From the sequence record PV112478.1: a stretch of 64,000 nt of DNA. One strand, 5' to 3'. Numbering within the stretch: position 1 is the first letter of the stretch; each line of letters begins with the position of its first letter. The notes under the pieces are model-generated. The model had not been told where the DNA came from, did no database searches, and saw only the letters and a program-made list of their open reading frames with translations. Positions 2,308 through 58,425 of the stretch are shown piece by piece. Position numbers and translations under genes: made by a program.

Positions 2308-3552
2308 ATGTATCAGCTTATTCAGGCACAAACACGAACGAAAGGCAGTTTTAATGATTGGGAAGAAAAGGCACTGGGTGAAGTACGACTGATTACCATC
2401 TTCACTTTGTACAGCAATGTTCTGGTTTACCTCTTCGACGCGACTAACGAGAAGAACGGGTGGCTGGATCTCTATAGTCTCCCGGTGTCGGTGCGCGATT
2501 CTGTCGCCACGTTAAATCAATACCTTGAATTAGCATCTGGTCTGACTTTGGTGGAAGACGACCCTCGTGGTCAACGCGGTGACAGTTACGTTCGCTTTCT
2601 GAATGCAATGGCGTACAAGTTCACCTTTAAAGGGACTAACGCTAATTTCAGTACCGACGAAAACCTGTTACCAGATCAACGTATTGACCTTCTGGTGCAA
2701 CGGGACGGGATTACCGATTACAGTACCATTGTTGACCAATCTCTTTGGACAGTCAACGGACTCTGTTTCCGAGCATGGCCGATTGATGGCGAAGGGATTA
2801 CACTGAACCACGCTGGTAAGTTTGCGTCCAAGTTTAACGACTTACGTGTAGGGATTCTGGATTTTAGTTCAATTGGGAAAGTAGAGACTTTCCCAATTTC
2901 GGCGAGTATGATTCAGGGCGGTGGGGAAGCGTTACCATTAGCTAAAGGGTTTTACTTACGTTCTCCGGTGGCGCTGACCGGGAAAACCGTTGGTCTGGTA
3001 GTAGCGGGGAAACTGTATCTTCTCGATAAAGAAGTCTCTGTTACTGGGGAAACCCGTATCCAAGTCCATATGCAGAATATCAACCTGATCAACCACTTTT
3101 TTGAAACGCACCAATATTTGGACTACAGTGACATTCCGCTTTCTAAAGATGAGAATGAAACAGAACAGGTGGTTGCAAATCAGTTCATCACTGACGCAGT
3201 GATCAAAGCGTTTATGACTTCGGTTTATTCTTTCCTGGTAGTGATCGACAGCGTGAACCTCGAGAAAGAATACCTCAGTTTGAAACGGACATTGATTGAC
3301 GGGACTTATCTCTCACCGGGCGAGACTTTACCTGACCTTCCGGCACAGATCGGTAACGGGTATCTGGCGGAGTATACCTTGTGGAAACAAGATGGGTTCT
3401 ACGCACTTCGTCTCCCGCATTCGTTGGTCAGTCGTTGGTTTTACGAAACTATTCCCATGAATGAACGTCAATTGGTTCAGAACCAACGTTACGGGTATAG
3501 ACCGACGTTCTCTTCTGAAGCGCGGTTTCTCTTGATTAAAAAGGTGGCCTGA
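2308..3552 (+). CDS. Conserved hypothetical, probably virion-associated protein
   Basis: Long ORF; likely start ATG 2308 after AAAAGGA; divergent from the tail fibre gene; no catalytic motif recognised. Confidence 0.55.
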   Translation: MYQLIQAQTRTKGSFNDWEEKALGEVRLITIFTLYSNVLVYLFDATNEKNGWLDLYSLPVSVRDSVATLNQYLELASGLTLVEDDPRGQRGDSYVRFLNAMAYKFTFKGTNANFSTDENLLPDQRIDLLVQRDGITDYSTIVDQSLWTVNGLCFRAWPIDGEGITLNHAGKFASKFNDLRVGILDFSSIGKVETFPISASMIQGGGEALPLAKGFYLRSPVALTGKTVGLVVAGKLYLLDKEVSVTGETRIQVHMQNINLINHFFETHQYLDYSDIPLSKDENETEQVVANQFITDAVIKAFMTSVYSFLVVIDSVNLEKEYLSLKRTLIDGTYLSPGETLPDLPAQIGNGYLAEYTLWKQDGFYALRLPHSLVSRWFYETIPMNERQLVQNQRYGYRPTFSSEARFLLIKKVA

Positions 3553-3554
3553 GT

Positions 3555-4154
3555 ATGTGGACTTCATTTTTCAACAACAAGTTAGTTAGGTGGCTTCTGG
3601 TCATTCTCTCTATTTTGCTCTTTATCTACGGTGTATTTAAAGCCGGGGAATACGCACAGAAAAAGATCACTGAAACAATCGCCGACGTCACGAACCAAAT
3701 GACGCAAACCATCCAAAAGAATTTGCAACAGTCGCTTGATGAGCACATGGGCGTGTTACAAAACGAATTGGATAATAACTTGTCTTCAATCAATGGTAAA
3801 TTCGATGAACAACAAAAAGCGATTAAAAATACTCAGTCTAAGCTTGATGGTATTGGTGATGTGTGGTTGCGCGTCGAAAGAGTACGTACCGACCAAAAAC
3901 ACATCGGTAACGCTCAAGGTACCGGAAGTCAAACTCCCGGAAGTTCGGGAGGAAGTGATGGAACCTATTACGCCAAACTTCCAGCTGAGAATGTGCAATT
4001 TCTTAAAGGGGAAGCCTTTAGAGCAGATCAATGCGCCGTGCGATTAAACGCTGCGCAGCAGGTCATCGTTCAGTATAAAGGGGCGTTTGTAAAATACCAG
4101 GAACTCGTGGAAGTTTACCTTAACGCCGCCCAACTTGATGGTAAGACAAAATAA
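3555..4154 (+). CDS. Rz: Inner-membrane spanin (Rz-like)
   Basis: Single N-terminal TM helix (LVRWLLVILSILLFIYGVF), long Q/N/K-rich coiled coil, one C-terminal Cys, and a nested lipoprotein ORF in the +1 frame. Confidence 0.75.
   Translation: MWTSFFNNKLVRWLLVILSILLFIYGVFKAGEYAQKKITETIADVTNQMTQTIQKNLQQSLDEHMGVLQNELDNNLSSINGKFDEQQKAIKNTQSKLDGIGDVWLRVERVRTDQKHIGNAQGTGSQTPGSSGGSDGTYYAKLPAENVQFLKGEAFRADQCAVRLNAAQQVIVQYKGAFVKYQELVEVYLNAAQLDGKTK
3805..4047 (+). CDS. Rz1: Outer-membrane lipoprotein spanin (Rz1-like), embedded in Rz
   Basis: MNNKKRLKILSLSLMVLVMCG-C: basic n-region, hydrophobic h-region, lipobox-like MCGC; Pro-rich mature part with C-terminal Cys residues; entirely inside the Rz-like gene. 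Confidence 0.75.
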   Translation: MNNKKRLKILSLSLMVLVMCGCASKEYVPTKNTSVTLKVPEVKLPEVREEVMEPITPNFQLRMCNFLKGKPLEQINAPCD

Positions 4155-54245: not shown

Positions 54246-54674
54246 ATGTCTAAAGCACGTAAGAAGAAACCCACTAAAAAGCCCGGTTACATGAAGTTAC
54301 ACGGGTTTCAATACATCAATGACATTATTCGGAAATCACCGAAGTTACTCTCCGAAGCCGCCACTATAGTAGTGCAGTTCGACGCCTTAGATGAAAAAAC
54401 TCTTTCTTTAGGGGAAATCCTGAAAGGGAAAGAAGAGATCAAGAAGATAGCAGAGAAAGCACCCTCTATTCGAACGACGCTCGAAGAACTGAAAACCGAT
54501 TTCGAAACGCTGGTTGCGACACCGGGTAAAAAGGAAGAAGAGCACTTCGCCGATTTGGTTGGACGTGCTGCTGAATTTATTTCAATGATCACTGAAGACG
54601 TGATTGCGCCGATGGCAGAGATCGCGGAGATTGTAGAAAAACGCATTAACCAAAAGGAAACTGTCAATGTCTGA
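54246..54674 (+). CDS. Hypothetical helical protein
   Basis: Likely start ATG 54246 after GAGG; basic N-terminus. Confidence 0.65.
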   Translation: MSKARKKKPTKKPGYMKLHGFQYINDIIRKSPKLLSEAATIVVQFDALDEKTLSLGEILKGKEEIKKIAEKAPSIRTTLEELKTDFETLVATPGKKEEEHFADLVGRAAEFISMITEDVIAPMAEIAEIVEKRINQKETVNV

Positions 54675-56391
54675 TTTTGAAAACGAACAGTCCGGTACTG
54701 AAGAAACCCCTACTATTCCTACCACGGGTGTAGGTATTCCGGTCACCAAACACGTTATCACTGACGACGTGTTTGAGGAAGCGCCGGTAGCAGTCTCCGA
54801 TGAGACTGTTCAGGAAGACACTGTCACTCCGGCGGAAGAAGAAACCAAACCGGAAGAAGAGACGGAAGAGAAAGAAGAAGAAGAACATCTTCTCTTTGAC
54901 GTCGAACCGAATAAAATCGTGATTGATCCGACTCGCCCTATCTTTGTCAGGATCGATCCTAATCAACGCGGCATTGCAGCGTTAAGTGTATTGCCCACGA
55001 CGCGTGCTGACGCAGAGACGTTTGAAGAAAGTTTGAATAACGTCACTAACGAAGACCTTGAATGGATTCTCTCGACTCGTAACGCGACGGATTCAGCGTA
55101 TCCCGGAAACGGTCTTCTGAAAGCGGCGATCCGTAACGGAGCAAAGTGGAAGACTCAGATCGAGAACCCGGCGACACCGATCCCGCTTTGTGATTACCGC
55201 AGTGCGTATAAGATCTTTGATCAACCGGCTACCAAAATTTCGGGTATTGATGCAATCGATATGTTCACGGCCGGGACTAACTTGGGTCGTCCTGTCACGG
55301 TACCGCTGTGGCACTCTGGTTTCTGGGTGAAACTCCGTGCACCGTCGGCTGCATTCTTAGCGGATATCGACCGTGCCTTAGCCTTTTCACGTGAAGAGCT
55401 CGGACTAGAAGTCTTCGGGGCGATCGGGGCCAATGACCGTTTGATCTTTGACGAGATTCTCGTTGACGCGGCGTTGAAACTCGTTGTAGAAACCAATATC
55501 CCGATTGCGAAATCCCCGATGGAATTAAAAGAGGTTATTGACTTCTTTGATATCGACAACCTGATCTGGGGTATGGCATTAGCAGCATTCCCGGACGGTT
55601 GCGAGATCGCCATTCCGTGCCCGAGCTGTCGCGGTGTGAGTCACGTCAAAGCAAACCTTCTCCGTATGCGTTTCGTTGATGAGTCGCGTTTGACGCAGGT
55701 TCAGATCCGTCAGATGGCCAAAGGGATTAGCCATAAGACAACGCTGGAAGAATTGAAGAAATATAAGGAAGAGTTCCAAATCCTCAATACTCAGAAATGG
55801 GAATGGAACAAACGTACTTTCACCTTCCGTTCACCAACGATCGAAGAGTACTTAACTTCAGGTCGGGAATATATCACTTCGGTTTCCCGTGCGTTAACAG
55901 AAACGCTGCGTGACGACATTACTGACGACTACCGCCGTGGCCAGAGCATGAAGTCAATCCTTAACACGGAAGAGACAGCGCGGTTCATGCACTTCATTCG
56001 TGAGATTCGTATCCCGAACACCAACGAAAAAGGTAACCCGGATAACTACGGGATTGTTACCGATTCCCATGCTATCCTCGATATCATGCGTTATATTTCG
56101 GGTGACTTCGAAGCCAGTGACGGTTTAATCGTGGCAATCAATGATTTCATCAATGACGCCATCTGCACTATCATTGGATTCCCTAACGTCAATTGCCCGG
56201 CTTGTGGTAAATTCTATCTCTCGAAGACCGGGGAAGCGACAATTATTGTTCCGTTTAACCCTGCTGTGGGTTTTTTTATCCTTGCGCAACACAAGATTAC
56301 GGAAGCGGGGTCGGAGCCACTGACGAATTTAATGACGTTAGGTCTGACCGGTTTGCTATCCAAGGTATCGGCCAGCGAGGCTCAGGGTTAA
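54667..56391 (+). CDS. T4 gp26-like baseplate hub / tail assembly chaperone
   Basis: FDIDNLIWGMALAAFPDGCEIAIPCPSC..KANL, TFRSPTIEEY and C-terminal CPACG..PFNPAVGFF follow the gp26-family pattern (recognised by eye). Confidence 0.6.
   Translation: MSDFENEQSGTEETPTIPTTGVGIPVTKHVITDDVFEEAPVAVSDETVQEDTVTPAEEETKPEEETEEKEEEEHLLFDVEPNKIVIDPTRPIFVRIDPNQRGIAALSVLPTTRADAETFEESLNNVTNEDLEWILSTRNATDSAYPGNGLLKAAIRNGAKWKTQIENPATPIPLCDYRSAYKIFDQPATKISGIDAIDMFTAGTNLGRPVTVPLWHSGFWVKLRAPSAAFLADIDRALAFSREELGLEVFGAIGANDRLIFDEILVDAALKLVVETNIPIAKSPMELKEVIDFFDIDNLIWGMALAAFPDGCEIAIPCPSCRGVSHVKANLLRMRFVDESRLTQVQIRQMAKGISHKTTLEELKKYKEEFQILNTQKWEWNKRTFTFRSPTIEEYLTSGREYITSVSRALTETLRDDITDDYRRGQSMKSILNTEETARFMHFIREIRIPNTNEKGNPDNYGIVTDSHAILDIMRYISGDFEASDGLIVAINDFINDAICTIIGFPNVNCPACGKFYLSKTGEATIIVPFNPAVGFFILAQHKITEAGSEPLTNLMTLGLTGLLSKVSASEAQG
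56268..56277 (+). promoter_or_regulatory. Candidate -1 ribosomal frameshift slippery site G GGT TTT TTT
   Basis: In-frame X XXY YYZ heptamers (G GGT TTT and T TTT TTT); -1 frame is stop-free from 56259 to 56792. Confidence 0.7.
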
Positions 56392-56795
56392 TTGAGAAGA
56401 CAGGCGGATTGGGGAACCTTTCCGCCAAAGTGGCGTTGCGCAGGGCGTACGACCTCGATAACGGGATTTACTCTGAAGCAGTAGATGCCAAAGTCCCTTT
56501 CTCTCTTATTGCGATGCATGAACCCGAAGCGGCTGCAAACAAAGGGAAATGGGATGAGTTACTCGAAAAATATCACACGCACCAGATTAAAGATTACTTC
56601 AACTTTACGTTTACAGATTGGGTGAGTCAACCTAATGATATGGTTGAAAAGCAAATCAACACTTCTATTCGGTGGCGTGAACGAGAAGTCAATGCTAAAT
56701 CAGAAGAAACGAAAGAGTTAGAGGCACAACTTTCCCAACAGGGTATTACGGTCCCTAACGTTCAAATGATGAAGGAAAAAGGCCATGGCCAATAA
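56277..56795 (+). CDS. gp51/gpT-like domain, probably made as a -1 frameshift extension of 54667..
   Basis: Track ORF begins at a TTG (56409), but the frame is open back to 56259 with no ATG/GTG/TTG; KYHTHQIKDYFNFTFTDWVSQP resembles chaperone T-type helices. Confidence 0.6.
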   Translation, partial: YPCATQDYGSGVGATDEFNDVRSDRFAIQGIGQRGSGLIEKTGGLGNLSAKVALRRAYDLDNGIYSEAVDAKVPFSLIAMHEPEAAANKGKWDELLEKYHTHQIKDYFNFTFTDWVSQPNDMVEKQINTSIRWREREVNAKSEETKELEAQLSQQGITVPNVQMMKEKGHGQ

Positions 56796-57423
56796 GTTTG
56801 ATAAAATCCAAAAGAAATCTCAGGAACTCTCTGACGCAGCAGATGCGGTAGCAGAGACGGCTGCTTCGGGTGAGAACGACAACGCTCCTGTTGCAGCAAC
56901 CGTGGCAACCGAGTCTGCGGTAGGTGGCAGCGTGAAAGTAAGCACAGTCTCTGAAACTGCGGCTAAAACTTCGGCCGATGTTTACGCCGGGGAAAGTGAT
57001 GCGGTCAAATTGATCATTGCACACCTCGAAGACTACGTTCTGAAAATGGCACCGGAAAAAGCGCAGACTGAATCTTCACTGAAAGAAAATCAGAGTGTGC
57101 TCTATCGGACACTGGAGCAACTGGTTAATCTGGACAATGTTGCGGATTTTGCGGTCTGCATGAAACGTCTGTTTGCGCTGGTTCGCAAATACGAAGACGG
57201 AGCCTTTGCGCCCAATATGCGTTTTCGTCGCCTGAGCCTTTTAGCGAAGGGTGATAAACAACTCGACAAATACATCGCGTTCGTCGACATGGTTTGCGCC
57301 TTTGCTACTCCCGCAGTGCGTAAAACTATCATTCAACGCTACAACCTGGCACGAGCGGCAGAATTCGCTAAACCGGAATATCGTGAGCGTCTGATTGAAT
57401 TCGTGAAGGCGATCAGCGGTTAA
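56785..57423 (+). CDS. Hypothetical protein
   Basis: 212 aa, AAGG SD, Ala-rich N-terminus; last gene of the operon. Confidence 0.7.
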   Translation: MANKFDKIQKKSQELSDAADAVAETAASGENDNAPVAATVATESAVGGSVKVSTVSETAAKTSADVYAGESDAVKLIIAHLEDYVLKMAPEKAQTESSLKENQSVLYRTLEQLVNLDNVADFAVCMKRLFALVRKYEDGAFAPNMRFRRLSLLAKGDKQLDKYIAFVDMVCAFATPAVRKTIIQRYNLARAAEFAKPEYRERLIEFVKAISG

Positions 57424-57426
57424 TTA

Positions 57427-57469
57427 CATAAACACTCCTCTCTCCGCCTAGGCGGAGAGAGGAGCTATG
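57427..57469. terminator. Perfect 30-bp palindrome with TATGTA on both sides
   Basis: CTCCTCTCTCCGCCTAGGCGGAGAGAGGAG (57435-57464) between convergent genes. Confidence 0.75.
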
Positions 57470-57471
57470 TA

Positions 57472-58425
57472 TTATTTTACCCAGACCTTTTCCCAGTTAC
57501 TAAAGATCTCTCTAGTAATAGCTTCTTTAAGTTCTTTATCCGTTATATTACCAAGATAAAAATAAATAAAATCTTCCATCATGACGCGTCTGCCGCTGTC
57601 GATTGCAGGGATCTTTTGCGCTGTTTGAACAACGTCAGTTTTAGGGAGATGTTCGCTTAAACTATTTTCTCCATTGAGGCGAGTAAAAGCTTCTTGTAAC
57701 TTAGATAATTCTTCGGGATTATCCAAATCGATAATAAGCGTTTGACGTCCGACTGGGGTAGGCGTGAAATTAGGGTCTTGGCGTTCTGCTGGGTATAACG
57801 GTTGAATTGAGTACTGGGGAGCGTGGCGCCGGAAGTGATCTTCACTTATGTCTTTATGCACACCAGGAAACATTTCATCTATCCGTTCTTTAATGTCTAC
57901 GGGTACGTATTCTTCCCCGTCGCCATTATCGTTAAAAAGTAAATCAAAGCCAATGATAGAAACGGATCCCGGTTGGATTTCTTCACGGTCTGCTTCTGGG
58001 TCGAACTGATCATGTGGCTTAGGATATAAATATCGGCCGTTAGATAACAACCGAGGTACGAAAGTATATTCCCCTTTGACAATACCTTCTTGGTAACAGA
58101 GCAAATGATCACGAGGGGTATTGGTATTTATCAGTGTTATTTTACAGGAAATAATCGTGCGGGAAATATCTAGTTTGAGTAATCCTGTGTTAGCGGTGAA
58201 TTTTGCTTCGTTCAGTAATGGGAAGAAGCTATCGTCACGGTCATGCTTTTTGGCATCACTACGATTGATTACACTGACGTAAGCTAACCCGGATGATGGG
58301 CCGGTGATATCCCCGATCGCTTTCATCAGTTCTTTAATGGGAACACCTGTACTTTGTGACAACTCATGCAATGAAAAGTATACAACGATACTCTCGTTAT
58401 TGACGATTTTTGCTTGATGATTCAT
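57472..58425 (-). CDS. Hypothetical protein
   Basis: 317 aa, AAAGG SD. Confidence 0.65.
   Translation of the reverse strand: MNHQAKIVNNESIVVYFSLHELSQSTGVPIKELMKAIGDITGPSSGLAYVSVINRSDAKKHDRDDSFFPLLNEAKFTANTGLLKLDISRTIISCKITLINTNTPRDHLLCYQEGIVKGEYTFVPRLLSNGRYLYPKPHDQFDPEADREEIQPGSVSIIGFDLLFNDNGDGEEYVPVDIKERIDEMFPGVHKDISEDHFRRHAPQYSIQPLYPAERQDPNFTPTPVGRQTLIIDLDNPEELSKLQEAFTRLNGENSLSEHLPKTDVVQTAQKIPAIDSGRRVMMEDFIYFYLGNITDKELKEAITREIFSNWEKVWVK

Follow-up and report, generated by a model that had tools for sequence, protein, structure and literature searches.

The DNA analysed here (the window, 64,000 nucleotides of record PV112478.1) is from Klebsiella phage LPKP23, a member of the Chimalliviridae. 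Toward its 3' end lies a 574-codon gene (ORF1), which belongs to the family of phiKZ gp77, 201phi2-1 gp136 and Chimalliviridae core gene cg18 and is shared by all nucleus-forming jumbo phages. Its 3' part overlaps a second open frame displaced by -1. The features of the locus are as follows.

54667..56391 (+): the frame-0 gene (ORF1, 574 aa); residues 1-85 are acidic and disordered, the folded core has four invariant Cys in two pairs, and the 37-residue frame-0 tail after the slippery site is conserved.
56256..56258 (+): TAA in the -1 frame, 13 nt ahead of the heptamer, which is the upstream bound of the -1 reading frame.
56268..56277 (+): slippery run G_GGT_TTT_TTT, in register with frame 0; the core heptamer T_TTT_TTT lies at 56271-56277 and covers the two invariant Phe codons 536-537.
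56277..56795 (+): the -1-frame extension, 172 codons plus the stop, consisting of a disordered linker of about 46 residues and a helical core of about 100 residues; it forms one protein family across 64 loci.
56277..56391 (+): the dual-coding overlap, where the frame-0 tail and the start of the -1 extension are both conserved as protein.
56409..56795 (+): the ORF as annotated in public records (TTG start, 128 aa), which is the 3' part of the -1 extension.

Frame 0 reads GTG GGT TTT TTT ATC at 56266-56280, so that two heptamers, G_GGT_TTT (56268-56274) and T_TTT_TTT (56271-56277), are in register with ORF1. The -1 frame is open from 56259 to its stop at 56793-56795, and holds no ATG, GTG or TTG between 56259 and 56408, the first being the TTG at 56409. 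Given that 537 residues are counted up to the second Phe and that the -1 stretch from 56277 adds 172 codons, the two products would be 574 and 709 residues long. Thus, every statement on the sequence made in the initial annotation, including both product sizes, was found to be correct. There are no tRNA genes in the window.

To determine whether the site is a chance feature, 64 distinct related loci, which fall into 52 clusters and are 22-85% identical in ORF1, were fetched from IMG/VR and GenBank phage records; they include phiKZ gp77, 201phi2-1 gp136, SPN3US, Moabite, PCH45 and a Bacillus phage. A lack of the slippery site in orthologues, or stops in the -1 overlap, had been named beforehand as grounds for rejecting the frameshift. 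Neither was observed: every one of the 64 loci has a run of at least five T's at the homologous Phe-Phe position, and in each the -1 frame stays open for 150-192 codons past the run, while the +1 frame is mostly open for only 1-70. In relatives the heptamer is T_TTT_TTT in 40, T_TTT_TTC in 18, G_TTT_TTY in 5, and a five- or six-T run in 6; some heptamers are non-canonical at the first position. By cluster, the run length is 5 in 4 clusters, 6 in 8, 7 in 31 and 8 in 9. The site is far more than a chance feature: across the 64 ORF1 homologues (100.6 kb) there is no other in-register T_TTT_TTY, and only 3 other runs of six or more T's.

Selection acts on the bases of the site and not only on the protein. 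In the 49 clusters with Phe-Phe, the first Phe codon is TTT in 49 of 49, where 20 are expected from each gene's own Phe codon use (log10 P = -25.5), and this includes 15 genes that use TTT for under 20% of their other Phe codons. The preceding third-position base is T in 46 of 49, against 14.4 expected (P = 6e-23).

The -1 stretch ahead of any start codon is likewise conserved as protein. A conserved His column (50 of 64) and Phe column (61 of 64) in the -1 frame lie ahead of any ATG, GTG or TTG in 52 of 64 loci, and beyond the frame-0 stop in 49 of 64; six loci, phiKZ among them, have no start codon at all before the core domain. In the stretch beyond the frame-0 stop and before any -1-frame start codon, differences between related pairs fall 85/48/162 on codon positions 1/2/3 of the -1 frame, and codons with a single change are 85 synonymous against 30 non-synonymous. 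The frame-0 tail is conserved as protein as well, and nucleotide identity to FBKp24 peaks in the overlap at 0.93-0.97, against 0.6-0.85 elsewhere. Furthermore, a profile of the extension, searched against 1.84 billion representative proteins, gave 201 hits. The 150 that were listed are all 77-186 residues long; none of them is fused in frame to an ORF1-like protein, and many begin inside the conserved core.

In contrast, no conserved stimulatory RNA structure was found. Folding on both sides of the site across the 64 loci, by a procedure that does not model pseudoknots, gave a median percentile of folding energy among same-gene windows of 0.59 downstream and about 0.5 upstream; at the LPKP23 site itself the z-scores are -0.8 and -0.3. 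An Rfam scan of 56100-56600 gave only chance-level hits. A small terminator-like hairpin just 5' of the T run is kept in FBKp24 but is not conserved. The efficiency of a shift may therefore be low, or it may depend on something not visible to these analyses.

Taken together, these results are best explained by a programmed -1 ribosomal frameshift at T_TTT_TTT (56271-56277), a reading to which we assign a probability of about 0.75. In this view, most ribosomes read on in frame 0 and make the 574-residue protein with its conserved 37-residue tail, while a fraction slip back one base as the Phe tRNA(s) sit on the T run, continue in the -1 frame for 172 codons, and make a protein of about 709 residues that has the same first 537 residues followed by a flexible linker and a helical domain of about 100 residues. 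The downstream 'gene' would then not be a gene of its own but the alternative C-terminus of ORF1. What our comparisons establish is the site, the relation of the two frames, and the conservation of both. On the other hand, that the long product is made, that the slip is made by the ribosome, that it is the minority event, and that a fixed ratio of the two products matters are all inferred from comparative evidence alone.

The strongest alternative, although an unlikely one, is transcriptional slippage, in which the phage or host RNA polymerase stutters on the T run and adds one U in a fraction of transcripts, whose ordinary translation gives the same long product. The conserved element is indeed a homopolymer, with seven or eight T's in 40 of 52 clusters, no RNA structure that would stimulate a ribosomal shift was found, and the Chimalliviridae transcribe with their own unusual multisubunit polymerases, whose slippage threshold is not known. 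Nevertheless, 12 of 52 clusters have runs of only five or six T's, which is shorter than the runs on which bacterial polymerases are known to slip appreciably. The run is also always in the register that lets Phe tRNAs re-pair, with the last codon TTT or TTC and T's before it, a register that polymerase slippage would not require.

Less likely still is that no recoding occurs, and that the downstream ORF is a separate small gene translated from its own start or by termination-reinitiation after the ORF1 stop, the open -1 frame upstream of it being incidental. All public annotations treat the ORF as a separate gene. In the window and some relatives a start codon lies shortly after the frame-0 stop (the TTG at 56409, 18 nt after it, with which an ATG is aligned in FBKp24), and some independent initiation or re-initiation cannot be excluded. 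However, start positions are not conserved among relatives, many of the annotated starts cut into the conserved core, and this reading does not account for the six loci without a start codon, the synonymous evolution of the start-less stretch, or the retention of the T run against codon bias. Finally, a homopolymer sequencing error or a real frameshift mutation splitting one long gene, although such runs are error-prone and the split falls exactly at one, can be all but dismissed, since the same -1 relation is seen in all 64 loci, from many laboratories, platforms and metagenomes and with run lengths of five to eight, no in-frame fused form appears among the 150 listed of 201 hits, and the frame-0 tail is itself conserved as protein.

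The interpretation offered in the initial annotation, a frameshifted gp26/gp51-like chaperone pair of the G/GT type, is supported in part. Its central claim, a programmed -1 frameshift giving a short and a long product from one gene in a phiKZ-like jumbo phage, is strongly supported by the comparative evidence, whereas the comparison of the upstream protein with T4 gp26 (Pfam PF12322; NCBI name 'gp26 family baseplate hub assembly chaperone') is only weakly supported. Both families have four invariant Cys in two pairs and an invariant Phe close to the C-terminus, in the same order, as seen in the invariant alignment columns and in the T4 gp26 translation, and T4 gp26 ends three residues after its own Phe-Phe. 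Foldseek matched the ORF1 model to predicted structures in BFVD named 'Baseplate hub assembly protein, bacteriophage T4-like' (E 1.9e-4 and 5.6e-3, TM 0.49-0.54 by target length), while no solved gp26 structure turned up in the PDB search. However, none of 14 members hit PF12322 at E <= 1, and profile-profile comparison with hhalign was not significant, either against a gp26 alignment (probability 0.7%) or against T4 gp26 alone (15%). ORF1 is also nearly three times longer, the Phe-Phe codons of T4 are not slippery, and the next T4 gene in the -1 frame is gene 25, a wedge protein with its own start.

The proposed likeness of the extension to gp51 or gpT is not supported. No similarity to T4 gp51 was found (hhalign probability 0.1%), and T4 genes 26 and 51 are divergently transcribed, hence they are not a frameshift pair. 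The model of the extension is of low confidence (pLDDT 54), and its fold hits are only its own uncharacterised family.

Membership in the lambda G/GT family of tail assembly chaperones, whose -1 frameshift is conserved in long-tailed phages, is not supported either. As in that system, a -1 slip near the 3' end would give a short product and a C-terminally extended one sharing their N-terminal part, the arrangement is conserved across a whole virus group, and the two parts are not fused in frame in any locus or listed hit; the protein is also apparently non-virion, as neither the phiKZ nor the Goslar virion structure papers mention it. However, searches of Pfam, NCBIfam and PHROGs gave no chaperone hit and no named function, and the PDB gave no match by sequence or by fold. 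The upstream part is about 540 residues rather than about 100-150, and the gene lies among DNA polymerase, RNA polymerase beta subunit and helicase genes, not between a tail tube gene and a tape-measure gene; the absence of an adjacent tape-measure gene had been pointed out in the initial annotation. In addition, the phiKZ homologue is listed among early-expressed proteins (PMC11849849). Coliphage T7 gene 10A/10B and E. coli dnaX tau/gamma are also -1 shifts late in a gene that set a fixed ratio of two products differing only at the C-terminus, although those sites depend on flanking stimulators, none of which was found here, and the protein families are unrelated.

By the weak likeness to T4 gp26, the protein may act as an assembly chaperone whose long form carries an extra binding domain, but this is speculation. 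A further possibility, which we consider unlikely but not excluded, is that the two forms are the functional counterpart of the G/GT pair in a lineage where none has been recognised, acting together in hub or tail assembly with the extension as the adaptor domain, the same recoding logic having evolved independently in an unrelated protein family. In a bolder variant, because the site has no RNA stimulator, the ratio of the two forms would be set or tuned by the phage's own ribosome-binding proteins.

While -1 frameshifts of this general type are established in other phages, public annotations miss the one inferred here, and among the papers we could search none describes recoding in phiKZ gp77 or in the Chimalliviridae; a 2025 review of nucleus-forming phages mentions no frameshift, recoding or slippage. 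The gene is core gene cg18 (Prichard et al. 2023, Table S3) of a family that includes heavily studied model phages such as phiKZ, 201phi2-1, PhiPA3, Goslar, SPN3US and PCH45. If the frameshift is real, every one of these phages makes an unrecognised protein of about 700 residues, and the small 'hypothetical' ORF downstream is mis-annotated in hundreds of genomes, with inconsistent starts that are often truncated. The extension domain is as widely conserved as the core genes but is missing from the core gene list. The frameshift would add a recoding event to a virus family whose control of translation is under active study, and the possible gp26-like, two-form assembly factor gives a first lead to the function of a core gene of unknown role.

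The region under study, from Klebsiella phage LPKP23 (PV112478.1, about 300 kb), is about 80% identical to vB_KpM_FBKp24, whose genus Maaswegvirus belongs to the Chimalliviridae, the nucleus-forming 'phiKZ-like' jumbo phages. Public records annotate two separate hypothetical genes here, the first of which is called a 'baseplate hub' in one record. It should also be noted that, among the sequences matching this region, several near-identical genomes (GenBank records MN871447-MN871453) are named 'Serratia phage Kp...' although the stated host is Klebsiella pneumoniae, and that they carry no annotation. Examination of the reading frames gave the following features:

54667-56391, ORF1, the frame-0 gene (574 aa).
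54667-54921, the N-terminus of ORF1 (residues 1-85), which is acidic and rich in Glu, Thr and Pro, and highly variable in length and sequence among relatives.
56266-56280, where frame 0 reads GTG GGT TTT TTT ATC, so that G_GGT_TTT and T_TTT_TTT are both in register.
56256-56258, a TAA in the -1 frame, after which that frame stays open to 56795.
56259-56408, a stretch of the -1 frame without ATG, GTG or TTG.
56409, the TTG at which the annotated downstream ORF starts.
54246-54674, a small gene of about 142 aa that overlaps the ORF1 start by 8 nt.

The initial annotation had described this slippery run, the start-less open -1 frame and the two product sizes, and its observation is correct in each of these respects. 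The products would be 574 residues, and 537 + 172 = 709 residues. A small gene of about 130-200 aa directly upstream of the ORF1 homologue, corresponding in position to that at 54246-54674, is present in every relative whose record was inspected, for example phiKZ gp78 and 201phi2-1 gp137.

To determine if this layout is conserved, relatives were collected in three ways. A tblastn search with ORF1 found 212 phage records; a tblastn search with the -1-frame piece alone found relatives whose alignments begin at residues 1-5 of that piece, that is, ahead of any start codon; and a scan of IMG/VR gave 58 further loci, mostly 22-27% identical in ORF1. In all 64 distinct loci, the ORF1 homologue has a run of at least five T's at the same place near its end. 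From there the -1 frame runs on for 150-192 codons, whereas the +1 frame is usually closed within 1-70 codons. The set includes phiKZ gp77, 201phi2-1 gp136, Moabite, PCH45, SPLA10 and Ea277G, and four further named phages that were checked separately (SPN3US, PS119XW, Deimos-Minion and Bacillus phage AgentSmith) show the same layout. Among loci with the Phe-Phe dipeptide, the heptamer is T_TTT_TTT in 40, T_TTT_TTC in 18 and G_TTT_TTY in 5, while six loci with a single Phe have a five- or six-T run in the same register.

To investigate whether selection acts on the bases themselves, the loci were grouped into 52 clusters (under 60% identity), and the 49 clusters with Phe-Phe were examined. The first Phe codon is TTT in 49 of 49, where twenty are expected from each gene's own Phe codon use (log10 P = -25.5), and this holds even in 15 genes that otherwise use TTT for under 20% of Phe codons. 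Furthermore, the third base of the preceding codon is T in 46 of 49, against 14.4 expected (P = 6e-23). Elsewhere in the 64 homologues (100.6 kb), there is no other in-register T_TTT_TTY and only three runs of six or more T's.

Comparison of the extensions indicates that the -1 frame is coding where it has no start. The 64 extensions align as one family, with a short conserved beginning, a variable linker, a His column (50 of 64) followed six columns later by a Phe column (61 of 64), another linker, and a core of about 100 residues. The His/Phe motif precedes every ATG, GTG or TTG of the -1 frame in 52 of 64 loci, and there is no ATG before it in 61 of 64. It lies beyond the frame-0 stop in 49 of 64, so it is not a shadow of frame-0 coding. 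Six loci, phiKZ among them, have no start codon at all before the core. In the stretch beyond the frame-0 stop and before the first possible start, differences between related pairs, which are not independent of one another, fall 85/48/162 on codon positions 1/2/3 of the -1 frame, and single-change codons are 85 synonymous against 30 non-synonymous. Annotated starts of the downstream ORF differ between close relatives, and some remove conserved residues. Indeed, public gene calls for it (Deimos-Minion gp272, at 3101-3649 of the Deimos-Minion locus L073, and the proteins P0026, P0028, P0035 and P0036) use very different starts, of which one overlaps the upstream gene by 136 nt and others begin inside the conserved core domain. 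Finally, a profile search of 1.84 billion representative proteins gave 201 hits; the 150 listed are all 77-186 residues long, many begin inside the core, and none is fused in frame to an ORF1-like protein.

On the same comparative evidence, both C-termini are real. In the clade of LPKP23, the frame-0 tail after Phe-Phe (37-44 residues) is well conserved as protein. Because both frames are constrained, nucleotide identity to FBKp24 peaks at 0.93-0.97 in 56317-56406, against 0.6-0.85 over the rest of the 2.7 kb compared. In phiKZ-like and metagenomic relatives, the frame-0 tail is only 8-19 residues.

The register of the run always allows a Phe tRNA, and usually two, to re-pair one base back, which fits a -1 ribosomal frameshift. 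The site, the frame relation and the conservation of both are shown by the sequences, while the slip by the ribosome and the resulting long protein are inferred from comparison alone. No stimulatory element was found. In folding that did not model pseudoknots, energies downstream and upstream are ordinary in the LPKP23 sequence (z = -0.8 and -0.3), and they are also ordinary across the 64 loci, with median percentiles of 0.59 and about 0.5; a search of Rfam gave nothing. A 5-bp hairpin at 56257-56272, immediately 5' of the T run, gives an intrinsic-terminator-like pattern inside ORF1, and is kept in FBKp24 but not across the 64 related loci. In the same scan, a perfect GC-rich palindromic hairpin of 13-14 bp was seen at 57434-57465, between the convergent genes 56785-57423 (+) and 57472-58425 (-), and it looks like a terminator on both strands.

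Polymerase slippage on the T run would give the same long protein and cannot be excluded, although the five- and six-T runs in 12 of 52 clusters, and the fixed codon register, argue for the ribosome. Separate initiation at 56409 may add some free extension domain, but it cannot explain the conserved start-less stretch. An assembly artefact is excluded by the number and diversity of sources and by the conserved frame-0 tail.

The identity of the protein was then examined. The phiKZ homologue is listed among early-expressed proteins (PMC11849849). It is not mentioned in the phiKZ structural atlas of 40 virion proteins (PMC13250141), nor in the Goslar virion paper. No Pfam, NCBIfam or named PHROG family matches, and no PDB entry matches by sequence. 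The AlphaFold model of ORF1 has pLDDT 70 and pTM 0.72, with a confident core at about 160-550; residues 1-85 are disordered in the model, and Phe-Phe lies at the start of the last long helix. The model has no PDB fold match. In the viral model library, it matches its jumbo-phage homologues and, more weakly, models named 'Baseplate hub assembly protein, bacteriophage T4-like' (E 1.9e-4 and 5.6e-3, TM 0.49-0.54). The model of the extension is poor (pLDDT 54, with a disordered first 46 residues and a helical core) and matches only its own uncharacterised family.

The initial annotation had likened ORF1 to T4 gp26 and the extension to gp51 and gpT, as a G/GT-type chaperone pair, and the T4 genome (NC_000866; the accession is given in PMC2993671) was compared directly. 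T4 gp26 has a Trp-containing motif, a first Cys pair, a second Cys pair and a Phe-Phe three residues before its stop, in the same order as ORF1. However, its Phe codons are not slippery, and profile comparisons are not significant. In T4 (locus L074, 7405-8429, genes 25 and 26), gene 25 follows gene 26 in the -1 frame with a one-base overlap, whereas genes 26 and 51 are divergent, and the extension shows no similarity to gp51. Hence, the proposed interpretation is supported only in part: the comparative evidence strongly supports the proposed frameshift, 'gp26-like' is a reasonable but unproven lead, and 'gp51-like' and 'G/GT family' are not supported.

Searches of the literature, which did not cover all of it, together with look-ups in the most relevant papers, including a 2025 review of nucleus-forming phages and a paper on a tool that predicts programmed frameshifts, found no description of recoding in this gene or family, and none of the annotated records inspected carries a joined coding feature. 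The gene is core gene cg18 of the Chimalliviridae (phiKZ gp077 = Goslar gp081 = RAY gp267, 'hypothetical protein'), while the downstream ORF is not in that core list (PMC10299810, Table S3). Taken together, what is proposed here is an ordinary type of -1 frameshift, inferred from sequence comparison, in a new and prominent gene family.
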